DNA from: Fonticula alba ATCC 38817
Lineage: Eukaryota; Protista; Nucleariida
Assembly (NCBI GenBank): GCA_000388065.2
Contig: KB932206.1
Reading direction: 5' to 3' (one strand)
DNA length: 64,000 nucleotides
Both the position numbers and the translations under genes were made by a program. Positions 33,879 to 60,700 of this stretch are shown here, in pieces; within the stretch, counting starts at the first letter, position 1, and the number at the start of each line of letters is the position of its first letter. A model generated the notes under the pieces. That model was not told where the DNA came from and did no database searches. It worked only from the letters and a program-made list of their open reading frames with translations.

Positions 33879-35418
33879 TCAATCGAGCTCCAGGCCATTG
33901 GCTGGTTGATACTCAATGGAAAGGCGGCCATGTGGGTCGCGCTGGGTGATAATCGCAACCCATCCCGGGGTGACCAGCCGGAGTGGCCCGGCCTCCGGCT
34001 CGTCTGCCTCGTCGTCACTGTCGATGACATACTGCTCGCCATCAATGACAAAGCCCAGACGACCGCCAACCAAGGTGGCTGGCACAATGCCTGGGAGAGA
34101 CCCAAGCGAGCCATCAGCCGGCGAAGCCCCGGGCCGGATGGCCGTGGCTTCGAGGCGTTCGCGCGCTGTTCGACGCACGGTCGCCGAGTCTGGTGCCCCG
34201 GCGGCTGTTGCCCGAGCCACTGCGCGTGCCAGAAACGAATGGAAGAGCCGTGCCTCATTGGCCGACCCCAGTTGCGGGCTTTCCCCCTTGTTGGGAACAA
34301 CAACATGGTCAACCGTGACCACGGTCGAGCTGGCGCCCATTGGCGGGGCAACTGTGAAGTGGACATTCGGCATGAGGGATACCGGGGCAGTGGTCGCCGG
34401 GACGCGGCCAAGGCCACTCGGAGCCCATCCAGTGAAAGCCATCATCTGAGGCGACGACATCACACGATCAGTTTCCAGGGAGTCTCCTAAAGCGCGAAGA
34501 GAGAGAGAGAGCGAGCAAGAGAGCAAGAGAGCAAGAGAGAAAGGGAGAGAGCAAGGACAACATACCGATTGGCGGTGCTCGGGCAGCAGGGCGTCTCGCT
34601 GGCCCGAGAGCAGCAGGACCGACGTACGTCCAGCAGAGGGAGCAGCCGGCGTTTTCGGTGGGCAGATGAGGCCCCCACCGACGGACACAGCCCCGCCCAC
34701 AGGCGGAGGAGCCGCCGGGTCGTCGGAGGCATGCGACGCCAGCGCATATGACAGGGCCACCGAGCCCCCGTGGCCGAAGCCCACCAGGACAATCGCCGAA
34801 GCCGGCCACGATCCGCACTCGGGATGTTCAAGCGCCCGGATCAGGTCTCCAAGGGATCGAAGCAGCGATCCAGGCATGCCAAAAGTGTGGGATGCTGATT
34901 TGGCGGGCCGAGTCGCTGGATGGGCCAGGTCGCATGCAATGTATCAGCAGCTTGGGTCAGAGGCAGGCTGGCATGTACCGGGAGGGCAGCGGCAGCAGCA
35001 GCGGCGGCGTCGCCGCCAAAGAAAAGAGGGGGCGAAGAAAGGGAGGATATAGCCGACATGCGAAACAGGGATGCAAGCTGGCACACGCACGGCGGTTGGT
35101 TCGCCAGTCCAGCGGGGCGTCCCACCAGAAGGGGAAGGACAAATCGAGCTCCTGCGACCCGGTGGACGACGGCGCACGTAGAGACAGTGCCGCACAATGC
35201 TCCAATTCCAGGCGCTCGGCCAGACGCTGGGCGGAGAGTTCATCCTGCCCCAGTGCATGCAGAAGGATCAGCAGCACCGGGGGAGGGGGGCCTGTCGGGG
35301 TTCCGGCCCGGCGGAAGGGCCTCGTGAAGCGAGCTCCCGTGCGCCAAGCTACAGGTAGCCGCCCAGAAGCCGGCCCGGAGAGACGCGCCGCCACCGCGCG
35401 CTTGCACACGGAGGACAT
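33879..35418 (-). CDS. Phospholipase/carboxylesterase-family (abhydrolase_2-like) alpha/beta hydrolase lacking the nucleophile Ser; exons 35418-35091, 34915-34566, 34445-33879 (~414 aa)
   Basis: VLLILLHALG (cf. hhhhLHGxG), LSLRAP...FWWD, IVLVGFGHGGSVAL (nucleophile-elbow position), VLLLSGQRDALLP. Both introns are GT-AG and phase-consistent. Arg-rich, acid-free N-terminus. Confidence 0.75.
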
Positions 35419-35631: not shown

Positions 35632-38176
35632 TCAAACTTGCGGACCGACCAGGGCCACGGTGAGCGAGGTATGCACCACCAGCGAAAGGAGGAAGGCCAG
35701 CAGGAGGCCGGTGTTGCCGAGAACCACCCACTGGCGAAGAATGCGGGCGTGCCGGCGTGCTGCCGGCCCCACAGCGAGCGAGGCATCCGGCCGACGGGGT
35801 GCGATGCCGCCGGGCTCGGCGCGTTCCGGGTCCTCACTCGACAGACGTCCAGCATCTGGGGGGAGATCGGCCGCGCGGCTGCGCGCGATGACCACCCACT
35901 CGATCAGTGACTCGGCCGTGCGCAGCCCGTCAAAGTGGTAGCATGCTGGCGAATTGAAAAAGGCCAGTGCCACGTTCACGCTCAGGGTGTACATGACGAA
36001 ATACCGTGCGGCCACCGGCATCAGCAAAAGGGCCCATAGGAGAGCCCTCCGAGCCAGGCCAAGTCCCCAGCGTGCCAGCGCTCGGATCGGCCGGCCGGCT
36101 GACAAGGGCGCTGCCGGGGGAGGGCTGCCGGATGCCTGGCCGGCGGGCCCCGGCTGCCAGAGGAAGATGTCCGGCGCATCCGGCCGCGGCCAGCGCGGAA
36201 TGTACCCGGACACGGTGATTTCCCGCCACAGAGACAGCGGGGAGCCGTAGAAAAAGATGGGCGGCAAAGGGACGCCCGAGGACTCGGCCATTGTCGGGCC
36301 ATCTGCCGAGCCGTAGTCCAACTTGACTTGGACTAGGCGTGTGCCTGGGGCCGTGTCCGGAGACAGGCACATGTGGCCTGGCTGGCACGCGGACGCCGGC
36401 CCGCAAGGTGTGGCCTCGGAGATCCCCCCGTACACCGGCAAGCAGATGGAGGTCTGGTTATGTTTGTGTCGCCCCGCATAGCCCCAGGGCGTGAAGGAAA
36501 ATGTGAGAAGGCGAAACAGGGCGGGGGTGCCAAGGCAGACCGTGCTCTCTCTCTCTCTCTCTCGCTCGCTCGCGCGCTCTCTCTCTGCCCAGAAAAGGGT
36601 CAAGAGGAGGGAAAGGGAGGAGGCAGAGAGGGGGGAGGAATACGCACGCGCGGGCGCAGGGGGTCTTCACCTGGGCGTGCTGGGGACCGGTCGACCAGGC
36701 AAAAGCCATTGGCCCCAGGCCGGGTGGCGGATCGATCGCAGCAGTCATACTCCGGTCGGGTGGCATACTCGACGATGGTTTTGTGCGACACGCAATAGCC
36801 ATCAAAGCGCTGGGGGATCGGGGAATCGGGCCCCACCTGGGCCGAGGCCATCGGGGGGGCACCTGCATTCAGATAATCGATGCAGGACACCCATGACTCG
36901 TGGTCGAGTACCGGACACCCGTCCAGCCGGCGGATACGTGCACCGAGCGGCAAGTACGGCCGCAGGGGAGAGGTCTAGGGGATGGCATTTTTTTTTTTTG
37001 CCCCCGCCCCCCATGCCCAGGCCCTCGTGGGGTTAGTCCCAGCTGGGAGATGCAGATGGCAATTGCTTGGACCGGCGCACCGAAGAGACATCGGCGACGG
37101 CGACCCCGGCACCAGTGCGCCATATCGCGAGGCCGGACTGGCCCGCCGGCGCAGCAACCCCAACGGCCGTCACCAGCAACGGCAGCACGATGGCCAATGC
37201 CAGGCAGGCCACCAGATTGTGCCACACGCCGGCCGTGCTGACCATGATCCGCTGCCAAAAAGTGCCCCGTTCATACTCGGTCTCATCGATGATGACACAC
37301 CCCCCGGGAAAGGGGGTGAGCTGGAAGTGGATCCGCTGCACGGTCATGGCCGACCTGCGCTTGTGAATAGCCCGTCAGTCCCATTAGACACAGGCCGAAG
37401 CAGCATGTGCATGTGTGCATGCATTTGTACACGCACGCCACGGCCGCCAGCGCATGGCCCAGCTCGTGGACCACCACCGACAGGAGCAGCACCAGGGCCA
37501 GGATAAGCATACTCGGCAGGGGAACATTGTAGCCCGGAATGAGCATCATCACCCCGCTTCCGGGGGCTGGCACGGCCGATGCGGTGGCCGGCGGAGGAGC
37601 CGGGGGCGAAAGGTCGGCCACCGCGCGCCGGTGCATCGATCGGCCATGCTGCCGAGATGTGGCCGCTGCCATGGACATCGCCGGCTCCGAGCCCCCCACC
37701 GGCTGGGAGCCGCCCCAGGTGCCCCGGACCAGATGCACAGACCCGGCCACCTGCAGCGAAGTCAAGCCCACCAGCACAAAGGGCAATACAAGCAGGAGCA
37801 CCAGGCCGACCGCCGCGCCGATGGAAAACCAGGCCCCCAGGGCTCGACGCGCTGTTCGACCCCCGAGGCGCCGGCGCAGCAGTCCGGCCACCGGGTCGGC
37901 CGGCGAAATGGCCAGCCCCAGCCGGAGCCCCTGGCGTTCAAAGGTGTAGTGCGCATCCGCCGGCTGGGGGACTACCGGTAGATTTGGCGCGGATTTGTCC
38001 GCAAGGTCAGCATCATGCCCTGGGCCCGGGAGTGATGGCTGGCCCCGGCCTGGTGTCCGCCCAGCCAGACGCATCAGTCGCCCAACCATGCGGCTGATCA
38101 CCGGCAGTCGCCGCCTCCCGGCATACGCCAGCACCAGGATCCCCACCAGGATGAGGGTCATCAGAGGGATACTCAT
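35632..38176 (-). CDS. MBTPS2: Site-2 protease (M50 intramembrane zinc metalloprotease, MBTPS2-like) with PDZ-like and Cys-rich luminal insert; exons 38176-37437, 37354-37081, 36974-36648, 36453-35632 (~720 aa)
   Basis: SVVVHELGHALAA (HExxH in a TM helix), FPGGCV, WQRIMVSTAGVWHNL, a Cys-rich insert (DCC...FCL...SICLP...PC...AC...CLSP), IFFYGSP and FNSPACYHFDG (NxxPxxxLDG equivalent). Junctions are phase-consistent. Confidence 0.9.
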
Positions 38177-39529
38177 GATGTTCCGGCCTTCCACAGGAGC
38201 CCTCCCCTAGGCATGTGTCAGGCTCAGGAAGATGGGCCACAGCAGGGTAGCTGGCAGGGTAGGTCCGGGGGTGGGGGGGGAGAGGGGGGGCGGGGGGCCG
38301 AGGCGGCGGGCTTTGACTGGGTCAGTGTTTGTTTGGTGGTTGTTGACTTTGTGGTGTGGGCGGGTGTGGTGGTGGTGGTAACTTTGTGTTGGTTGGGGCG
38401 CCAGGGGTCCGTGTTCTTCTTGCTCTTGTGTTTTAGGTGGTGTCGGCGCCGGGTTTCGCTGCTGGGAGGCGCGGCTACCGGCCGCTCGGCCATCGGGCCG
38501 GGTCGCGTGAGTCGGCCTTCTTGCCGGCGTCCGCCAGCCGCCGGGCTCGATCCGGAGTGTGCCAAAGAGGGGCGCTTTTTCCCTGCATCCCCGGACATTC
38601 GCAGCTCGCCCTGTGCCAGCAGGCAGGCTCGACCCGTGGGATGATGGAGAGCGTTCGCGCCCTCCCCCCCCCCCCCCCCCCCCCGACCGCGCCGCACGCT
38701 GGAGAGCCGGAGGCCAGAGGGAAAAAAAAGGCAGGACAGAAGACAGGGCGATGGCAGACCGCACCTCGTGCAGCAGGGTCACGGGACCGGTTTTCATCCC
38801 CGTCACGGTCGTGCCAATCACGCCCCGACTCACGGGTACCCCCTAGCCATTGCAGAACACCCGGCCACAACCCATTCACACGCCAACCCTCGCTCCCCCG
38901 CCAGGCACACCTTGTTGTGGGCGAAGCAGAATGCGCGACTCCGGGGGACATGAGTCGTCTTCGCGCGTTTGCGTGGCAATCACCGCCGGCCATTGGGGCC
39001 GGTGGTCGGCCGCGAAATGTCCCGCAAATGAGGGCACAGAATACAGCGCATCATGGCCCTTCGACGGCCACACAGCACCGACAGGTTCGGTCCCGGAGCC
39101 GGCTCGAGTCGGCCTGGGATCGTGAGTGGGACCCCCGCCTGCTGAGCTGAAATGCCCTCGCATNNNNNNNNNNNNNNNNNNNNNNNGGGGGGGGGGGGGG
39201 GGGGGGGGCGAGCGGGAAAAAGAAAGGCCAGCACGCCTTGGCGCGATCGCGGCAGACAAGCGAGGCAACCGGCCTTCATGCACCCGACCAAGGCTGCCTC
39301 CCCCTCCGCCCCCCCCTGCCCCGCCACCCGCTCTGCCACGCACCACTCGTCCTCCTGGGCCACGTGCCATACTACCCCCGGCTCTCTGTTGCCCCTCTTG
39401 CGCTGCCTTTTCCTCGCTCGCCCCCTCCCTCCGGCCCCTTGAGGGACCCTGCCAAAAGAACACCCCCCACCCGATGGCCCCACCCTCGTCCAGCAGGGAG
39501 CCCTTTCCTCGAGCGACGCCGACCCAACG

Positions 39530-42500
39530 ATGGGCCCTCCCCCTCGCGATCGCTCCGGCACCGGGCTTCACTGGTTGGGCCTCCACCAGGGCTTGAGGGG
39601 CCCTATCTTGCTGCAGCAGCTGCTGCTTCTCCTGCTGCTGCCGCTGTGCCTCGTCGAGGCCGTTGCTCGGGCCGACATGCGCGGGGGCTTCCAGCCCGAA
39701 GTCCACGTGTATGACCGCCTGCGATCGGTGAGCTTGGTGCTGCGTCTGGCCGACCAGGTGCCGACCGGCAGCAGGGATGTCCTGTCCGCCGGGGCCCTGC
39801 TCCGGGCCCTGGAGCACGGAGCCGGCGCCTGGAGCCCGGCCCTTCGCCGGTGCCGGCAAATTGCGCTGCATGTGTTGACTGCCGCGCCAGACTCGTCAGC
39901 CGACCCGGCCTGGTACGAGCCGGCGGCCGATCGATTTGACTCTCACCGGGCGGCCGACGCCCTCACCCCGTTGGAGGTCTTCGCCCGGCGGGAGGTTGAG
40001 CGAGTGCGCGGCCTGGCCGGGGGCGGGGGGGCAGCCCGCCGGCCCGGCGCATCCGCACCGCGCCCCATCACCCGCGGCCATGTACGTTCACTCGGGTGCG
40101 CCCTTCTCCATGCCCGGGCCCTGGTTGTGGGCATGGAGGTGGTATGGGGCCCGGGTGGGAACGGCGGCAGCAGTGGCGGCGGCGCGCAGGCCGCCGCCGA
40201 GGGGGACCTCCTGCTTCTGCCACCGGTGCTGGAGCTGCTCGGGGCCCGGGCCGGGGCTCGATCCGCCGGGTCCGAGTATGGCGCTTCGGCGCCCCCCCCA
40301 GGACCGAGCCTTCTCCTGCCGCTGGCTGTTGGACCACGCGGGGAGCTGGCCCTGCCGAGCACAAGCGACTCCGGGCTCGATCGGGCCATCGCCACGGTCT
40401 TGGGCAAGGCCAGCCTGACCGAGCGCTGGTGGTTGTGTTCCTCGCTCTTCCTGCAGCGCGAAATCCTCGGTGCCCTGGAGACGACCCTCTGGCTGCCGGA
40501 GGTCCTGGCCGAGGCGGCCCGGCAGACAAGCCCGCAAGCCCGGCCATGGACGCCCTGGCCACCGCCGCCAGGCCCGGGCCCGGTGCGCCCGGTGCACGCC
40601 TGCGAGCCGCCAGCCTCGGCCGGGCTCTTCCTCGGAGCCATGACCATGGACCCCTGGGACCGATGGGAGATCCCGAATAAGGTGGGGGCCGCCCGGCCCA
40701 AGGCCCGCGACGTCCTGCGTGCCATGGCCGTGGCCTCTTGCATGATGGGCCGCGATGGGTTGGATCCGCTGGCACAAATTTGGGTCCGGGGGAGCACGGT
40801 CCTGGTGCACTTCCCCGCGACCCCGGCGCACCCTGCGGCCGCGTCCGCCGCCGCGGCCGAACTTTCGTCCGTGGCAGACATGCTTCCGGGTGACCCTCTC
40901 GCCGGGCCGGTGACCGCCGCGGCCACGGCTGCCCTGCGCTCCGGTGCCACCTTCGTCGAGTGCGAGGTGTCCCCCTCGGTGCCAGCCTGCCGGGTGGTCC
41001 AGTCGCGCTGGTTCGGGGGGACGGCTGACGCGCCACCCCCCCGGGCCCCGGCCATCCGGCTTCTCACCGCGGCGGCCGACCGTCACCAGCGCCTCGAGCA
41101 GTTCTTGCGGAATCTGGACCCTGTCATCCGACCGGACGGGCGTTTCCCCAGCCGTCGAGCTGGTCCCCAGGGCGGCAGCACTGGTGACAACAGCACCAGC
41201 GCCAACCACACCAGCAGTAATAGCAGTAGTAGTAGCAGCAGCAGCAGCAACAGCGACTATGGCACAGGTACCGAGTCCGGCGGAAAGACCCCGTCCCTCG
41301 CGGCTCGGGTGTCGCTCTGTGTGGCGCTCTTTGCCGGCGCCCCGGACTTTGAGCGGAGTTTGGCACTGGCCCGGGCCTACCAAGCTCGGTGGGCAGCCCT
41401 TCGCGCGCCTGGGCAGCATGCCCCGGCCCTGGAGCTGGAGATTCGCCAACTGGCCGGGCCTTTCCGCCAGGCGGCCGCCCTGGACGCGTGTTTCGCGCGG
41501 GATGGTATGTTTCCCCCCCCCCCCCCCCGATACATCATGCGGAATTCCGTGGGGTCCGATGGTCGCGAGCGAAACCCCCTTCATGGCTAACCCGGGGGTC
41601 ATGGCTCCCCCATGGCATCAACTCGCCTGCCCGCCGCATCCATGTGGCCGGGGCCCGGGCCTGCTCCGGCAGTTGCCGCTGCGGAGGAGGGCGAGGACAT
41701 TGTCATGGTGATGGATGTGGACATGGACTTCTCGCCGGGAGTGCTCTTCCAGCAGGTGGTTCGGTGGCTGGGCCCCGGGACGCCCAATGGAGGGCCCCTG
41801 GCCCGGCCCCTGGCGTCGGTTTATGCGCCGATCGTCTTCTACCAGGGCCAGCAGGCTACACGTCGGAGCGACACCAAGGCCACATCAGTCGGTGGCCGGA
41901 GCATTGCCGCGATTTGGCGCGAGGCCAAGCAACTTCTCGAGGGGGCTCAAGGGTCCAGCAGGCCCCGCATGGCCGGCGAGGACCACGCCAGCGAGACACC
42001 CGAGCATGATGCGGGCAGCGAGGACCCCCGCGGCTGGGCATCCATGGGAACCGGCATTGTGGCCGCACGGCGGGCCACCTGGGCCGATGCCGGAGGTTGG
42101 GCCGGGGGACTGGCCGTTGGCCGGGACCGGCCATTGCGCACGGACCCCGGCCTGAGGCGGCTGGTCTGTTGGTCCAGCCGCCCGACCGGCGGCCCGGACC
42201 CCTGGCTCTTTGGCGCCCGTCATGGCTGGGAAGACACCGACGCCTTCTTCCGATTGGCCATCGCCGGCGGCGGGCCAGCCCGGCTGGCACGTTGGCGCGA
42301 GCCGGATCTGGTGCACGCCTGGCACCGGCGAGATCATGCCGGGCGCCCGGAAAGCGCCCCGGGCGGCCCGCCTGGCGCGGGACCGGACACCACCGATGCC
42401 CGGCTGAGTTCCGTTGCCCGATGGTTCGACAGCACCATCAGCTCTCTGCCTGCGGTACGCACAGGCAGGAAGGCAAGCCCCCACGATCTGGGCCCCACGC

Positions 42501-43801
42501 ATTCGGCCGGTCCACTCGCGGCGCCATGCTCTGACCATTTGTTCCCCCCCCCCCCTCCCCTCTCTTGCAACCTCTTCACCTCTTGGCGACCCATCGACGG
42601 GGACAAAATGCGGCGCATCTGTCCCCGCCCCTCGGCTCGGTCCACCGCACAGCCGCACCTGTGCCCGGCCATCCCCCGTGGGGCTCGGCTGCGTGACACA
42701 CAGGAGCCCCTCTGGCGGCGCCTGGTGGCCGCCCCGGGCGCCGAAGCCTGGAACGGGGTGTACCTGTATGCGGGACCCACCGGGCCGCGTGCGGCCAGTC
42801 AGGGCACGGTGTTGGCCATACGCGAGCACCATCCGGCACGCTTGTTGCTGGGGCTCCGGTCGCCGGAGGCCTTTGCACCGACCGACGGCACGGGGAGCAG
42901 GGCATCATTGCCGGCTCGACGGGAGCTCCTCTGGGTGCCTGCCTGGCGCCCGGAAGTCCCGCAGCCGGCCCCCCGACCGGGGCCTGGCGGCGAGCCGCTG
43001 GCCGTGCGCCTGGCCCCGGCATTCCACCAGCCAGCACACCCGGACTTCGCCGGGCGCATGGTGCACATCGCTTCGACCCTTCCCTGGGCGGCGGACTGCG
43101 CGCCGGCTCGCATAGTTCAGAGTCGCCTCAGCCCCAGCAGCCCGGAGGCCGGGGCCGGTGATGGCCGCGGCGGGTGCCCGCTCTTCGCCGGCGCCAGGGC
43201 CGCTCGATCGGCCGACCGAATGACCTTCCACTTTGAATGGCCCACCCTCGAGGAGGGCGACGCCCCGGCCATTCGGCCAGGCGCCGGCCCGGCTGGGCTG
43301 TGCCTTTGCCGTCTTGTGGAAGTGCTGTCCGGGCATCGAGACCACCCGACTCGGGTGGTGGGGTGTGGGGGTCAAGTGGAGGTCTTCCTGCCGGATGCGC
43401 TGGCCCCCGCCTGTCGTGGGGCCTTCGAGGAGGCCGGCGCCGCGGCCGTGATCTTATGCTCGACGGCCTGCCTGGCTGGTGGTCGGCACGATGCCGCCGA
43501 GGCCGCCAGCCGGCCGGCCACCATGGCCTCCCTGCTACCGGGGGCCGATGTGGCGGAGGCTCTGCGCGCCGGTGCCGGCGGCCGGCCGACCGTCTGCTGG
43601 CTGGCCAACGGCGACTCGCCCCAGATCCTGGGCCGGGTGGAACTCACGCAGCTTGGCGGCGACCCGATGGACTGCGTCACGCCAGACGGAGAGGCGCTCG
43701 AGCCTTGGAGCGTTGACGACGGTCTGGTGATTGCCAGCCTTCGGACACAGCTCGTGCATCTGGACCCGAACACCATGCGTGCTGAGGCCTGGCCCGAATA
43801 G
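39530..43801 (+). CDS. Putative secretory-pathway glycosyltransferase with a chondroitin GalNAc-transferase (CHGN/GT7-like) domain; exons 39530-41504, 41673-42454, 42653-43801 (~1300 aa; second intron probable)
   Basis: N-terminal hydrophobic stretch (ILLQQLLLLLLLPLCLVEAVA). Intron 41505..41672 (GTATGT, GCTAAC branch, CAG; phase 1-1) joins the two ORFs. The motif series RLEQFLRNL, IRQLAGPFRQAAALD, VMVMDVDMDF (DxD), VYAPIVFYQ, GWASMGTGIV, GWEDTD, LVHAWH parallels the CSGALNACT/CHSY C-terminal domain as I recall it. Confidence 0.65.
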
Positions 43802-43891
43802 TGGCTGGGCTCTTGCCGGAGGAAGGGGACAAGGGCCGGTGGCGGTGGCGGTGGCGGTGGCGCCGGTGCCGGCGGCGGCGGCGCGAGGCAT

Positions 43892-43929
<38 letters not shown>

Positions 43930-44310
43930 CAACTTCCCTCCGGCACGTTTGCCTACCACATCATGCCCACAAAAATACACCATATCATCTCCAGGAGCAC
44001 TGTCCGATCATCTGTGGGGGTGGCGGGGCCTCAAGGGCCGGAACTCCCGCGTATGTGTGTGTGTGTGTGTGTGGGAGGGGGGACGCGAGGTCGCAGTTCC
44101 GGTGGCAGTTCACCGAGCTGCGTGGCCGATCGGCTCTTTTTCTGCGGCCCTGGGGCCGAGCCAGGCAGGCCACGGGGGCCAGCAGATCTCCGCCGCCGCC
44201 GCCCCCCTCCCCTGTGCCCGCGAATTTTCCTCCTCTCGCCGCCGCCGCCGCCGCCTCCTCCCTCCCCCGCTCGCCCCCCTCCCCCTTCCTCCTGGAACTC
44301 AACCCCCCTG

Positions 44311-46089
44311 ATGTCTCTTCAGCATCTGTATGGCCGGCCGAGCGTGATGACCGCGCTACGGGCCGGCATCCGGCCACTTGCTGAGCTGACCCTGCTGGTC
44401 CCGCCCGGCTACACCAAGCCCAACGGCCCGACCAAGAAGCCCCGGAAGTCGGCCGGGCAATTTGGCGCACACCAGCCCGAGCAGGACCTCACTGTGACCC
44501 GAGAGGTGGAGGCCATGGCCCGCGAGCTGGGCGTCAAGGTGACCCTCACCACGGACCGGCACACCCTCAATGCCCTGGCCAAGCAGCGGACACATGGGGG
44601 CATGGTCCTGGCAACGGGGGAGTTCCCGCTAAACAGCATCTCGCGCCTGATGGGGCCGACCCTGCCAGAGGCGCTGGCCACCGCCGTGGCTCCGACCACC
44701 CCCGGCCCGGCGGCTGACAGCGACCCCTCTGACGCCGGCAACAGTGCCACTGTCTACAACATCCAGGTGACCGGTCCGTCCGGTCGGCGTGGGCTCAAGC
44801 CCCGGAGCTTCCCGCCGGGGCTGACTGGCGGATCGACCGCCCACCACCGGTGGCCCGTGTGGCTGGCATTGGACGAAGGTGCGCATGCGCGCGCGATCCA
44901 GGCACCCCCCCCCCAGCCCACCAGGATCAACCCCTCCCCCTCTCCTGCCGTTCTATGCCCTGCTCCAGCTCACATGTCCCTTTGCTCCCCTTCCCCCCCC
45001 CTCCCCCCCCTCGCCCCTGTTGGATGCAGTGGTCGATCCTCAGAACCTCGGAAGTATCCTTCGCTCGGCATACTACTTTGGCGTCGATGGTGTGGCCCTG
45101 TGCACGCGCAACAGGTTCGTTGTCTCGGTCTTTGGTGGCCCCCGGTTGCTTGTGGTTCGGTTGTGATGGGCCCACCTCTTGCACCCCTCTCACCCCCTCT
45201 TGCACCCCTCTCCCGAAGTGCCCCTTTGTCTCCGGTAGTCAGTCGCGCCTCGGCCGGCTCCCTGGAGGCCTTCATCTCGCCCTTTCCCGATGGGAAAGAC
45301 CAGAAATCCGCCCCGATTTCGGAGCGAGCCGATCAGCAGCCACTCCTGTACAATGTTCAGGCCATGACCCGGTTCCTGGCCGAGTCACGGATCAACAGCT
45401 GGGACATCATTGGCACGGTGGGGCCGGACTTCGAGCCGGATGTCCAGGGCTTGACGGCCGACAGGGCCCCGAAGCAACAGCCCCCGACGCCGACCCTGGC
45501 CGAGGCCTCGCTCGCGGCCCTGCGCGCCTCGCTCCCGGCCGATGCCCTGCCGGAGCCGGAGCCGGAGCCGGAGCCGACGCCCCGCGACCCGCAGACGCGC
45601 TTTGAGGGATCATCCAACATGGCGGACCTGCTGGTGTCCGGCCGGCCGGGCGACGGGGAATCCGAAGCCTCTTGCCCGGGGGAGAAGGTGCTACTGACTG
45701 TGGAGGATCTATCCGAGCTGGAAATTCGCCGGCCGACCATCATTGTTCTCGGGAATGAAGGCCGCGGGATGCGAACGAATGTGGCCCGGCTGTGCAACCG
45801 GCTGGTCAGCGTTCCGCGCGTGGGCCGGGCCCCGGTCTTTGCCAACTCCCTTCCTGGTGGGTCCGAGGAGGTGGTCGACTCGCTGAATGTCGGCGTGGCC
45901 ACCGGAGTCATCCTGAGCGAGGTGGTTCGCCAGGCACACCGTGGCTGGACCCCCGAGTTGGGGTCCGACTTCTTCGAGCACAACCTGGCCGACGTTCAGC
46001 AGCTGGATCGGGAGATCGCCCACATCCGCAGTCTTAAGAAGGAGCAGCAGCAGCAGCGCCAGCAGCAGGAGCAGGGGCAGGATAAGTGA
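44311..46089 (+). CDS. MRM1: SpoU/TrmH-family rRNA 2'-O-methyltransferase, MRM1-like; exons (5' end unresolved) 44311-44878, 45030-45114, 45219-46089
   Basis: HLYGRPSVMTAL, LNALAKQRTHGGMVL, WLALDEVVDPQNLGSILRSAYYFGVD, NSAPLSPVVSRASAGSLE, IVLGNEGRGMR, DSLNVGVATGVILSE (SPOUT knot motifs). The two introns are phase-consistent. A CTGAT...CAG just before HLYG suggests an unresolved upstream exon. Confidence 0.88.
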   Translation: MSLQHLYGRPSVMTALRAGIRPLAELTLLVPPGYTKPNGPTKKPRKSAGQFGAHQPEQDLTVTREVEAMARELGVKVTLTTDRHTLNALAKQRTHGGMVLATGEFPLNSISRLMGPTLPEALATAVAPTTPGPAADSDPSDAGNSATVYNIQVTGPSGRRGLKPRSFPPGLTGGSTAHHRWPVWLALDEGAHARAIQAPPPQPTRINPSPSPAVLCPAPAHMSLCSPSPPLPPLAPVGCSGRSSEPRKYPSLGILLWRRWCGPVHAQQVRCLGLWWPPVACGSVVMGPPLAPLSPPLAPLSRSAPLSPVVSRASAGSLEAFISPFPDGKDQKSAPISERADQQPLLYNVQAMTRFLAESRINSWDIIGTVGPDFEPDVQGLTADRAPKQQPPTPTLAEASLAALRASLPADALPEPEPEPEPTPRDPQTRFEGSSNMADLLVSGRPGDGESEASCPGEKVLLTVEDLSELEIRRPTIIVLGNEGRGMRTNVARLCNRLVSVPRVGRAPVFANSLPGGSEEVVDSLNVGVATGVILSEVVRQAHRGWTPELGSDFFEHNLADVQQLDREIAHIRSLKKEQQQQRQQQEQGQDK

Positions 46090-47217: not shown

Positions 47218-50200
47218 GTTGCCGAAGGAGAGGGTTAGCATTGGTGTGCATTCGCCACCCTTGCAAGAGTGAGTGGCGCGTCTGGACACGTACCGATGCC
47301 TGGCGGACTTGGCGGCCGGTGATGTAGCCCGGGCCTCCCTCCATGCAGCCGGGGTACATACTGATTTCATTCTGGCAGCGGAAGTGCAGACTGTCTGGCA
47401 TCTGGATGGCCATCATCGTTGTGAAGGCATAGGTTGTCGGGGCAATGAAGCGTGTCCAATACAACCAACGCGGGAAGACACTGTGCGGGTACGCGGGGTG
47501 TTGGGGGCCATCAGTGTGGGATGAGGTAAGATGGGCTCGGGGATGCATGCATGGCACATAGACAATAAAAAAGAGACGGAGAAAAGCCCGGTGGCTCGGT
47601 TGTCCGCTCTTGACATGGCATCCTCCCCCCCATTCGCGAGCGCGGCAGGGCGGACGGCCGGGATGGATTGTCACGAGTGTGGTACATCCCCCCATCGGGC
47701 CGCTGGCTGGCCGGCAAACGCCCTTCCCCGCCCCCGCTCTCTCCGCCTGCTCTACTCTCGCAGCCCTCTCCCTTAGTCCTCCCCCCCATGACAGAGCATA
47801 CCTCAGATAGAAGCCTCCCACCAAGAGGAAAGTCAGCAGGAGGGTTGATGAGATGACAGTCACTGAGGACCGCCCCACAGAGTACGTGTGTGTACGCGCA
47901 CACACACGCACACGCGCGCACGCGCGCGAGGTGAGGGGGCGATTGTCCACGGCACACGACCAGATGGAACCGAGGCGCGTCAGAAATCGTCGGACAAGCC
48001 CAGGAGCATGCGCGCTGCTGGGCGCGGCTACCCCACCGCCCCTCGCCCTGCCCGGTGGCACACGCACCCTTTTGGATGTCAAACACAATGGCACTGATGA
48101 GCAGGGCAAAGGCCTGGAAGGTCCATGTGCAGACAATCAACAAACCAGCTGTGGCGAAGAAGGCGACGGCGTTGATGCGCAGGCCGGCCATGAAATAGAC
48201 GATACAAATGTACAACAGCGGCAGGAATGCCATGTACAGCATTTCCGCCACGATCTTGGCCGCATACCAGGACGACAAGCGGTAGGCCTTAGCCATGCGG
48301 TCCTTCATGATGACCAGGCGCTCGAGGGGGACTGCAGGCAGTCGAGAAAAAGGCCCACGCACATGTCAGAAAAAAGGCGTCTGCAGGGGGCGCGCGTCGT
48401 GAAGGGGCCCAGAGGAACCATGGCGCCATGATGCGAAGGCCCGTCGGGGCCAGTCGCGAGGACTTCTCTCCTTGGCCCTGCCCGCCCCCTGTGCTGCTCC
48501 ATTTACCCGGTCGTGATCACTCCTCTCGCCCCTCCTCCGCCTCTCTCTCTCTCCCCCCTCCCCCTCTCTCTCTTCCTTCCTCCCTCATAGACACAGGCAA
48601 GCATCGGCCTTTCTCGACGCACAGGAACTAGTGGTGGTGACGACCGGGAAGAAGCAGAAAAGGGTGGTCGAGAAGAAAAGCAAACCCACACGATCTTGGA
48701 TGGAGTTTTCCTGGAGCTTGGTCTGGAGCCACAAGAGACCCACAATGACAGACACGGCGACAATCTGAATGACCTGCATCTTGCCGAGGATGATGCCAAA
48801 TTGGTGCTTGAGACTGGAGGAGAGGGGCAGCGATGAGCAAAGGGTCGAAGTCAGGGCTGGCAAGTCCGGGCTGGCAAGCCCCCCCCCCCCCCAGTGGGGT
48901 GCTTTGGGGAGGTGGCAAGTGTGCGGGAGGAAATGTACGAAAGTGCCTCACTCCCGCCCCCCCCCCCCCCTCCCTTGGGCCCGGGCGTCATCAATGTGGG
49001 AAGAAAAGGACAGTGGGAAGGCACGGGGGCGGACGTGAAATATGGACGCACCTGCGCTCAAGCAGCACAAGGAATTGCATGAGCCAGGTGCTCTGGTAGG
49101 CGCGATACCCCTCCGGGGCCCGGTCGAACATGCGCCGGAAGAAGCCCTTCTTTCGCTGGTACTCCTTGCGCTTGGGGGCGTTCTCGACGAAAAGCCGCTC
49201 ATTCTCCATGGAGTCGGCATAGGCGCGATCGTAGTCGCCGGTCTTTTCGTCGATTTGGATGAGCTGCTGGCATTCGTCCTTCTGCTCGACCAAAACCTGG
49301 AGGGCGTAGTCTGCGATGTTGAAGAGCTTCGGGCAGAAGAGGTTGGCCATGGCCAGGCGCCGATGGAGGTCCTGCGGCCGGCCGCGGAAGACCGATCGGC
49401 CCTCCGCGAGGAGGGTCAGCTGGTCGAACATGTAGAAGATGTACTCCGACGGCTGGTGGATGGAGCAGATGATGGACTTGCGGTCGATGTGGGATAGGCG
49501 CTTGAGCACGCGAATGAGCGATGCCGCCATGCTGGCATCGAGGCCTGCCGGCGATAGGAGATCCCCGGGGGACGCGCGTGCGTGTGTGTGTGTGTGTGTG
49601 TGTGCGTGTGTGGGAACAGGAGGGCGAGTGAGATTAAGCTGACATGGAGCAGGCCCGAAAAAGAAAAGCCCGGCCAGAGGCCAGCCGATAACATGGTCCC
49701 AGTACGCCGGGAATATCCACATACCACTTGTCGGCTCGTCCAAGTAGATGACACTGGTGTTGGCCAGCAGCTCAGCGCCAATGCTTGTACGCTTGCGCTC
49801 ACCGCCCGACACACCACGAATGCCGGGCCCACCGATTTTGGTGTTCAGGCACCGGCGAAGATCCATCAAGTCGATGATTCGCTCAAGCTATCATGAATGG
49901 GACATGTGCAGGCGAGCAACATGCAGGGGGTGTGTCCCCCTCCCCCCACTCATGATGAGTGCCATAGTTAGTGAACCGTGGCCAAGCCCCCGGAGATGCC
50001 CTCCTGCCGTCGACCGTGTGCGAATGTGTGGAGCGACATATTTCCCTCTCCGTCTGTCCCTCCCTCTCTCTCTCTCTCTTCCTCTCTTGCTCTCGCCTTT
50101 TTCTTTGTTAGTGCGCGCGCGCGCGCGCCATGAAGCGCACCATCTCGAGCTTCATCTCACGGCTCATCTCACGGGGCAGTCGAAGAAGAGCCTGGAGGAG

Positions 50201-57700: not shown

Positions 57701-60700
57701 GGGGCCAGTGCGGGCCGGCCGTGCCTGCCCCTCGCCACGGGCTCCGGCGAGGCCCTGACCCCGCTGATGCTGGTGTCCTATGTCGAGGACACCGACACGG
57801 CCGTGGCCCTGGCCACCCTGCTGGTCGAGGGGGTGGACCTTGTGCCGTTGGCCGGGCAGCCGGCTGGCGGGCCAGCAGGGCGCTCGGCGCCGGCCTCCCT
57901 GGTGGACATGATGCTCACCCGGCAGCTGTCCGTGCTGGGGCTGTATGCGGCCCGGTTGCGGGCGGATTTGCTGACGGACTTCATCGGCCGGCACTTCTCG
58001 GCCGAGCAGCTGGCCCCGCTGCTGACCCATGTCACCCTGGACCAGTTGAACCCCCTCGGTCTGGCCATTCGCATCGGGTATCTCCAGGGCGGCAGCCATG
58101 GCCGCCATAGTGCGCCGGCCATTTTGCGTGATGGGCTTGGTCGTGCCCTTCGCGAGCAGCTCACCTGCGACACCGTCCGGGCGCTGCTGCGCCTGGGGGT
58201 CCCGGCTCGCGTGCTGCCCGAGCACCAGGCCGCCTCCAAGGACCTGGCCATGGCCACCTGGACCGCCGGGCTGTCCTTGCACAGTGCCCGCTGCTATGAG
58301 ACCCTCCCGGACGAGCTCCAGCCCTGCTACATGGCTCTCGAGGCCCGGCTGCCCCGGGTGCTGGAGCTCCTCCTCGAGGCGGATCCCTCGCTGGCCACCC
58401 TACGCCTTTCGGGCGTCGCACTGTGCGCCGCCCCCCCGGCCCATGCCCCTGGGCCACGGCCCCATTTTGCCGCCAGCCCACACGCCCCCGGGGATGCTGC
58501 CCGTGGGCATGCTTGCCATGACTAACACACCCGGCCTGGGCCGTGCACGGCTTGCCCTCCCCCCCCCCCAAAAAAAAATGCGACTCTCCCGGCGCCCGGC
58601 GGACGGGATGACGCCCGCCGCAGCGCGCCTGCCAAGCTCCCCGACCGTCAGCTTGTCGCCCCCGCCGGCGGGGCTTTCGCCGCACGCGCCCCCCTCGGGC
58701 ACGGGGCCGCCATGCCGGAGCCGGCCTTCCACCTGACGGACTCGGTCCTGGCCACGGCCGCCCGGATGGTGCAGGCGGCCCAGGCCGACGCCAGGGAGCT
58801 GGCCGCCCTCCAGGCTGCGGCTCCCGCGCTCTTTGACCTGCTCGAGCAGGTGTACTCCCATGCGGAACTTGGCAAGGCCACCGCCACCAATGAGGTGGCC
58901 ATCAACGCGGACGATCTGGACATTGCCGACATCCGGGCGGCCATGCGAGTCATGCGCCGGGTCATGCGCGACGAGTACCTTGCCGCGGCGGGCCTCGCGG
59001 GCCGGCCGACCGCCGGCGATGATGCCACCATGACCGACGCCACACCGGACGCCGGCAGCATGCCGGCCGGCCCCCAGGCAGACGATGATGCCGACCTGTC
59101 CGATGCCCCGGAGCCGACCATCGACCATGAGGACTATGCGGCCGGGCGGCCGGCGGTCGACCAGTTCCTCTGGCAAGCCGTCGGCAATGTGGCCGGCCTG
59201 TCGATGCCGGAGCCCCGGCTGTCGGATCGGGATGACCAGGTTTTCCGCCTGCGCAATGCCATCCGTCTGCGGAATGGCGAGCCCCGCCTGCCCCGGGCCC
59301 CGACCGGGCTGTTCGAGCCGGCGGAGCTCTTCGACCCGGCCAGCGTGACGACCATTCGCTCGGCCCTGCGCACGCGCCGGCAAATCCTGCGGGAGATCCA
59401 CCGCCACGAGGCGCTTCCGGCCGCCGGCGCGGCCCCGGGCCCCGGGGTGATGGTGACGCTTTTGCTGCACGACCTGGCCGTGGTCAATTTCATGGTCGGC
59501 CTGCCGGCCGGCGATCGACTCGACGACCGGGACCCGGCGCGCGGCGAATCCGGCCCGCTCGCGGCCGCCGACCACCCGCCAGGCCCCCTGCATCGGTTGC
59601 GGCCTGCTGCGCGCGACGCCCTCGACCGGGTCATGGCCGCCGCATCCGACGGCCTGTTGGCCCGGCAGCGGGAGGACTTCCGCCGGCTGGGGCTCATGCA
59701 TGAATTGCTGGCCCGGCATCTTGGCACGCCGTGCACCTTCCCCCGGCGGTATCCCCCTGCCGGGGACCGGCTGGCGCCCCGGGCCAAGCGCGTGTGGGCC
59801 GCCGGCTACGACGACCCCGAGGCCCTGGCCCAGCATCTGGTTCAGGAGGTGGCATTCCGCGCGTGGGCCAAGGTCACCGTGTCGGTGGCCGAATGCCTCC
59901 TCCGGAGCCTGACCATGGAAGCCATCCAGGCGGCCCTGGACCGGGAGTTCGAAGGGCACGAGCGCATGGGCACCTGCCCCCAGCTGGGGGCCTTCATCAG
60001 GCGCCTCGCTGGCGCGATGCTGGCCCGGGTCCCGGGCACGCTGGAGGCGACCATGGGCCAGGATCGCCACACGTCCGATTGCCGGGCCTTCGGCCCGGGC
60101 AGCGGCCAGGGGCCCGGTCTGCGGGTGGGCTTCCGGGCCGGGGGCCACCCGGTCCAGGGCCCGGCCAATGAGGCCATCTACCGGGCCCTCTTTGAGGCGG
60201 TCTTCGCCGGCGACACGGCCCTTGTGGCCCACTTGACCGACACGACGGCGCACGGCCCGCGCGTGGCCCTGGTGGACAGCTGTCTGAGCGGGTCATCCAT
60301 GACCACGCCCCTTCGGGTGGCCCTGCGGTTCTTGCCCCGGCCCGCGGCGATGGTGGAGCTGCTGCTCGCGCGGCTGGCTTGCCAGTACCGGCCGCGTATC
60401 AGCGCGGCGGCGGTGCGCGTGGCCGCCGCCCAGGCGGCCGAGTCGCCCGGGGCCGCGGCCAAGCGCGCCGCCCGCATCAGCACCCTCGACTTCTTGGCCA
60501 TGACCTTCGGCGATGGGCCCGACCAGGCCCTGGACTATCTGGATGAGGAGCCGGCCCCGGGCCCGGGTGCCGGCCATGCCGGGGGGCCAAATGCCCCGGC
60601 GGATGTGCCCCCCTCGCTGGGCCTCGGCCGGGGCCGCGGCAAGATGGCCCACCGGGCCTTTGCCCGGGCTTACCGGGCCAATTGCCGGGCCCAGAGCACG

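Follow-up and report, generated by a model that had tools for sequence, protein, structure and literature searches.

A highly diverged candidate GT-A glycosyltransferase domain in a predicted secretory-pathway protein of Fonticula alba

The window analysed here, a stretch of 64,000 nucleotides from contig KB932206.1 of Fonticula alba ATCC 38817 (assembly GCA_000388065.2), carries on its + strand a gene whose predicted product contains an ordered series of glycosyltransferase-like motifs. The gene is composed of two open reading frames (ORFs), 39530..41590 and 41612..43801, which share one frame (codon starts at positions = 2 mod 3, from the ATG at 39530 to the stop codon at 43799-43801) and are split by a single TAA codon lying within a putative intron (Table 1). 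A first-pass annotation, made from the letters alone, had read the motif series as a chondroitin synthase or CSGALNACT-type (CHGN), GT7-like glycosyltransferase domain, divided by that intron, and had proposed that the lineage may make a glycosaminoglycan (GAG)-like extracellular polysaccharide. All of the motifs it quoted are found at their positions and in their order, in one + strand frame. Those on the exon-1 side of the DxD motif, between 41309 and 41491, would sit where the second strand and the pre-DxD loop of a GT-A fold are expected.

Table 1. Features of the gene and of its candidate glycosyltransferase (GT) domain, with the basis of each (HMM, hidden Markov model; nt, nucleotides)
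Feature	Position	Strand	Basis and remarks
Exon 1	39530-41504	+	658 codons and one base; ORF and codon-position GC
N-terminal hydrophobic segment ILLQQLLLLLLLPLCLVEAVA	39605-39667	+	signal anchor or signal peptide, judged from hydrophobicity and position only
Candidate GT-A first strand and helix RAPAIRLLTAAADRHQRLEQFLRNLD	41042-41119	+	GT2 HMM alignment
Motif RHQRLEQFLRNL	41081-41116	+	translation
Ser/Asn-rich low-complexity insertion	41162-41290	+	translation; codon-position GC disturbed; 41188-41263 masked as repeat in read mapping
Motif VSLCVALFAGAP, including VSLCVALF (41309-41332)	41309-41344	+	translation
Motif LEIRQLAGPFRQAAALDAC	41435-41491	+	translation
Putative intron 1	41505-41672	+	168 nt, in frame, GTATGT...CAG; encloses TAA 41588-41590; C16 run 41513-41528; GCTAAC 41586-41591
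Exon 2 (or exons 2 and 3)	41673-43801	+	ORF 41612..43801; codon-position GC
Hydrophobic strand and DxD, IVMVM-DVD	41699-41722	+	DVD at 41714-41722; candidate metal and nucleotide-sugar site, from general GT-A knowledge
VYAPIVFYQ, candidate strand after DxD	41819-41845	+	translation
MGTGIVAARRATWADAGGW..., candidate 'G.G....R......GGF' element	42041-42118	+	weak GT2 HMM alignment
Glyco_transf_7C-like domain end, GGPDP...GWEDTD...LVHAWH RRD	42188-42343	+	BLASTP, hhalign, HMM, language model
GWEDTD	42224-42241	+	within the Glyco_transf_7C-like end
LVHAWHR	42308-42328	+	H..H at 42314-42325
Possible second in-frame intron, or coding linker	42455-42652	+	198 nt, GTACGC...CAG; C12 run 42544-42555
C-terminal region, ~380 residues	42653-43798	+	no recognisable domain; unmatched by Pfam, NCBIfam and PDB

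Relatives of the predicted protein were sought exon by exon, on exon pieces, in all profile, PDB, language-model and fold searches. An exhaustive phmmer search against 1.84 billion representatives gave three matches, of which the one non-repetitive match is a bacterial protein, P0002, with three GT2 plus Glyco_transf_7C domains; the other two, P0001 and P0003, were set aside as tandem-repeat junk without a family. The P0002 alignment falls on the motif GG.DP...G.ED.D.FFRL..AG...VH..HRRD, with 45% identity over 65 residues (BLASTP), and the P0002 stretch aligned to the Fonticula piece overlaps the bacterial protein's own Pfam match to PF02709. We did not accept its phmmer E of 4e-6 as significant, as a local phmmer run showed this value to be the sum of three near-identical repeats. 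The language model, calibrated such that about one in 100 shuffled proteins reaches 0.95, linked the exon-2 piece 41675-42460 at 0.97 (recognition 2720) to clusters from bacteria and phages that carry PF02709, PF10111, PF00535 or PF13712. Comparison of exon 2 by hhalign with either 121 or 22 members of the bacterial GT2 family yielded a probability of 82-84% on the ED...H motif, over the same 56-59 columns.

An HMM built from 121 bacterial GT2 domains provided an independent test for exon 1. The exon-1 piece RAPAIRLLTAAADRHQRLEQFLRNLD (RAPAIRLL...LRNLD) aligned to HMM positions 9-34, the first GT2 strand and helix, with an E of 3.8e-4 for this one comparison, and its score was reached by none of 5000 shuffles; hhalign places this piece at the same domain start, though not significantly. 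The exon-2 middle piece aligned to positions 175-201, where a conserved order would put it, at a weak score that 135 of 5000 shuffles reached, while the exon-2 end piece aligned to positions 193-242 at a score reached by none of 5000. The three pieces follow the order of the bacterial GT2 family.

The motif series was also compared with chance. A core signature of four hydrophobic residues and DxD, 100-280 residues, G.?ED.D, 15-45 residues and H..H matches one place only in the six-frame translation of the window and appeared in none of 20,000 shuffled versions of the 708-residue exon-2 ORF. This result is indicative and should not be taken as an exact probability, since the pattern was composed after viewing the sequence. 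The hydrophobic strand with its DxD is weak taken alone (hhhhDxD occurs in 3.6% of shuffles). The acidic motif and histidine of GT-A/Glyco_transf_7C enzymes are present as GWEDTD and HAWH, which are separated by 28 residues, compared with 27 in the bacterial GT2 family. The strand-helix that opens such a domain is likewise found upstream of the DxD, with the order kept.

Several results weigh against such a domain. Pfam, including PF05679, PF02709 and PF00535, recognised no family at E <= 10 in either whole exon or in any of seven shorter pieces (HMMER filters discard most matches above ~0.1); the PF05679 and PF02709 profiles named in the first-pass annotation were thus silent on every exon piece. 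NCBIfam had no match for any exon piece, and PHROGs gave noise only. PDB sequence searches with five pieces found no glycosyltransferase, returning either nothing or noise (endonuclease G, sphingomyelinase, DUF3494, CENP-H). A word-index protein search with exon 1 and the glycosyltransferase part of exon 2 found neither relatives nor the locus's own product; no orthologue or paralogue that could show conservation was present in the libraries searched. The single domains of P0002 score 10-17 bits and single-domain relatives at most 21 bits (E 12 at database scale). The language-model matches share 151-158 of 256 features, which is typical of distant relatives or of chance, and the exon-1 piece went unrecognised by the same model (0.83). 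The DxD piece, VSLCVALF and LEIRQLAGPF did not align to the GT2 family HMM, and single-sequence AlphaFold2 models reached a mean predicted local distance difference test (pLDDT) of 34.6 for the exon-2 glycosyltransferase piece and 41.8 for the N-terminal region. Since profile and fold methods have more difficulty with a GT-A domain that is divided between two pieces, the silence of Pfam carries less weight here than it would for an intact domain. Pfam does recognise domains of the neighbouring genes (SpoU, M50, ABC2), and its silence is therefore specific to this gene and does not reflect a general composition problem of the genome.

The same blank searches of curated HMM libraries and the PDB, per-domain GT2 scores of only 10-21 bits and lack of an AlphaFold fold favour the most serious alternative, namely that the gene does not encode a glycosyltransferase at all but an orphan secretory protein of low complexity, rich in Ala, Gly, Pro and Arg, whose motifs arose together by chance. 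The short end piece scores no less well against endonuclease G and a sphingomyelinase than against any other PDB entry, and a look-elsewhere effect is to be expected when 64 kb in six frames are scanned for such patterns. We consider this explanation unlikely, while granting it a real share of the probability: the language-model neighbours, the P0002 match on the catalytic motif and the exon-1 alignment are three independent lines that lead to the same family. The exon-1 piece played no part in choosing the GT2 family, yet no shuffle equalled its score, and the signature missing from every shuffle of exon 2 is accompanied by a conserved order and ED-to-histidine spacing.

We conclude that a GT-A domain ending like Glyco_transf_7C has genuine though slender support, and that the gene probably codes for a secretory-pathway protein, some 1,300 residues long, with a lineage-specific GT-A domain that is of the GT2/GT7C kind and has diverged strongly. 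Of the earlier GT7-like assignment, the part that probably stands, on the strength of the language model, P0002, hhalign and the exon-1 alignment and against the silence of Pfam, NCBIfam and the PDB, is a GT-A-type domain with an end of the Glyco_transf_7C type. In the proposed model, the transcript would lose at least one intron and its product would enter the secretory pathway by means of the N-terminal hydrophobic anchor. The middle third (~41040-42345) would form the diverged GT-A fold, split by one intron and broken by three low-complexity insertions of ~45, ~65 and ~30 residues, and its C-terminal part would correspond to Pfam Glyco_transf_7C, which is common to bacterial GT2, GT7 and GT27 enzymes. 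By analogy with these enzymes, the strand with its DVD and a histidine of HAWH may bind both a divalent metal and the diphosphate part of a uridine diphosphate (UDP)-sugar, and an acidic residue of GWEDTD may act as the catalytic base. The enzyme would work by an inverting transfer, with a glycan or a protein as acceptor, in the lumen of the endoplasmic reticulum (ER) or Golgi.

Two further parts of the predicted protein deserve mention. Within the N-terminal region, AlphaFold reached some confidence (pLDDT 58-73) only for a small alpha/beta unit at 40694-41005, residues 345-448 of the piece folded; it lies just upstream of the candidate GT-A start and may be either a part of the catalytic domain or a stem module. 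Toward the C terminus, a stretch at 43300-43620 (+), ...VVGCGGQVEVFLPD...AFEEAGAAAVILCS..., looks by eye like a protease-associated (PA) domain; Pfam found none there.

Whether the motifs stand in a single polypeptide depends on the gene model. Codon-position GC follows a coding-like high-low-high pattern from 39530 to ~41509 and again over ~41690-43760, and is flat between. Only six in-frame GT..AG pairs are able to excise the TAA, and all six leave both motif groups in one polypeptide; among them, the intron proposed in the first-pass annotation, 41505-41672, has by far the best splice signals, with a G preceding its GTATGT donor and a pyrimidine-rich CAG acceptor, CTGCTCCGGCAG. We take the locus to be a real gene and this segment to be its putative intron. 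The earlier claim that splicing joins the two motif groups thus agrees with the splice signals, the frame and the GC periodicity, the splicing itself being putative. The alternative is that the two ORFs are unjoined, either as separate genes or as a decaying pseudogene in which the stop at 41588 is real. It could draw on the failure to find the product of the locus in either protein library and on an assembly gap 340 nt upstream of the ATG. We regard it as very unlikely, given a canonical donor and acceptor, an intron length that is a multiple of three, and coding periodicity that is lost only inside 41505-41672 and returns in the same frame. In addition, ORF 2 on its own, starting at 41612, would lack a signal sequence and contain half a domain only, and the frame is open over 4.2 kb except for the one stop. 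The GC pattern weakens once more at 42410-42600, where the candidate second intron has no internal stop. Antisense ORFs at 40088..41602 and 41885..42832 (- strand) were discarded as high-GC artefacts: their codons fall on the same boundaries as those of the + frame, and their translations are rich in Arg, Gly and Pro.

The assembly gap near the gene consists of 23 N followed by a G22 run (39164-39208), and the 5' end of the locus is perhaps incompletely assembled. This part of the window is rich in homopolymer runs of C or G, 10-22 nt long (41513-41528, 42544-42555, 58559-58569 and 13 others between 38 and 60 kb). Three of them sit within putative introns, each of which has a CTAAC/CTGAC branch-like element 80-120 nt from the acceptor; this arrangement is possibly a trait of Fonticula alba introns. 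Four RNA runs that were mapped to the locus proved to contain no reads of Fonticula alba; the only reads placed were poly-C reads, which adhere to two of these runs (41513-41528 and 42544-42555).

All relatives that the sequence searches brought up belong to a bacterial GT2 family of the Chloroflexota/Actinomycetes type ('family A'; P0002 and P0004-P0123), which combines PF00535 with PF13641 and, in P0002, ends in PF02709. The Fonticula domain shares with it the end motif, the strand-helix at the domain start and the ED-to-histidine spacing. Unlike the bacterial enzymes, it shows similarity limited to ~25 + 25 + 55 residues, has DVD where they have DDD and GWED where they have GGED, carries the three insertions, is matched by no Pfam GT2 model, and belongs to a eukaryotic protein that has a predicted signal anchor and a length of ~1,300 residues. 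The nearest solved structures of the bacterial family are E. coli K4 chondroitin polymerase (2Z86/2Z87), heparosan synthase and the polypeptide GalNAc-transferases, all metal-dependent GT-A enzymes. The first domain of the K4 polymerase ends in ...HWGGEDNEFGYRL...AYH, a motif of the same kind; however, this enzyme has two GT2 domains compared with one candidate in Fonticula, and direct PDB searches miss it. The path from Fonticula through the GT2 family to the K4 polymerase is indirect, reflects general GT2/GT27 kinship, and is not evidence for chondroitin in Fonticula. Beta-1,4-galactosyltransferases (GT7) and polypeptide GalNAc-transferases (GT27), the original bearers of Glyco_transf_7C, are alike in their GT-A DxD (DVD in B4GALT1) and in a C-terminal acidic motif with a histidine that closes the metal site. 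They differ in that PF02709 itself did not score on the Fonticula pieces, and GT27 enzymes are retaining, whereas the Fonticula ED motif looks like that of inverting enzymes.

The assignment to CHGN, and with it the GAG-like polymer, is unsupported. The motifs on which it rests occur widely among GT2, GT7 and GT27 enzymes, and the best match is a bacterial GT2 protein. The animal CHGN enzymes (CSGALNACT1/2, CHSY1/3, CHPF; PF05679, CAZy GT7) would share type II topology, a DVD-type DxD, G-W-(x)-E-D and an H-x-W-H style ending with the Fonticula protein, and VYAPIVFYQ would resemble their VYFPIVFSQ; this claimed likeness could not be confirmed with any tool. In contrast to these enzymes, the Fonticula gene lacks a PF05679 match, an upstream GT31/Fringe domain and CHGN proteins or neighbours in the searches. 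CHGN was absent from the 30 nearest language-model clusters, which carry PF02709, PF10111 or PF13712 or are unnamed, a negative weakened by the mostly metagenomic content of the Atlas. Neither Pfam nor a PDB search detected a Fringe/GT31 domain upstream (39530-41026). CSGALNACT-type members need no such upstream domain.

It is nonetheless conceivable that the protein does belong to the CHGN/GT7 clade, from which it would have diverged deeply, and makes a GAG-like chain for the fruiting-body matrix. Fonticula aggregates lay down a structured extracellular matrix (PMC5055082), and the chondroitin pathway, being documented in choanoflagellates as well as animals, is older than animals (10.1101/211789, citing Woznica et al. 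2017). Fungal sequences have been reported as sister to the GT31 domain of CHSY/CHPF synthases, in which a Fringe-like GT31 domain precedes the CHGN domain, the latter being described for metazoan members (PMC8022947). We judge this reading about as improbable as that of unjoined ORFs: besides the silence of PF05679 and the missing CHGN clusters and Fringe domain, the exhaustive search gave no animal, choanoflagellate or fungal protein, and the GG.DP element and the HRRD after the histidines fit the bacterial GT2 family. A pre-metazoan chondroitin synthase likewise has no positive evidence beyond the claimed motif likeness, and a literature search found no paper tying Fonticula to chondroitin or to the gene at 39530-43801. 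No more probable is that the domain is a relic, beyond profile detection, of an opisthokont-ancestral GT7/CHGN-type beta-1,4-N-acetylhexosamine transferase, used to polymerise or cap an acidic, GAG-like glycan in the matrix of the cone-shaped fruiting body; if true, chondroitin-type biosynthesis would date back to the root of the opisthokonts and not just to the choanozoan stem.

The surrounding DNA is that of a eukaryote: GC is high (0.6-0.74), introns are short, and both assembly gaps and homopolymer runs of C or G occur. The low-GC bins in the composition profile of the window are accounted for by another seven N runs (10-980 nt). No glycan-related clustering was found around the gene, and its neighbours are ordinary eukaryotic genes. 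On the - strand upstream lie an abhydrolase ORF at 33882-34877 (phospholipase/carboxylesterase, Abhydrolase_2, E 5.8e-6) and an M50 peptidase fragment at 37286-38194, with a HELGHALAA motif and a weak match to Peptidase_M50 (site-2 protease; E 1.1e-4, under the Pfam cut-off). Downstream, (CA)n/(GT)n microsatellites at ~43830-44100 precede the last exon of an MRM1-like SpoU-type RNA methyltransferase (45400-46086, + strand; PF00588, E 1.5e-9). Pieces of an ABCG-type half transporter follow at 47514-49869 on the - strand (ABC2_membrane, E 1.3e-15, and the end of ABC_tran), with introns that carry (CA)n repeats.

A chondroitin-type identity, if true, would matter far more than the reading that we favour, as GAG biosynthesis has so far been traced only to animals and choanoflagellates (10.1101/211789); the present evidence does not support such an identity. 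If the more cautious reading of a diverged GT-A domain holds, the gene would add one more lineage-specific glycosyltransferase of the Golgi or ER. The multicellular stage of Fonticula relies on a secreted matrix, and the gene would then be a useful candidate for work on that matrix. It would also be an example of how a GT-A domain may drift below the reach of profile detection.

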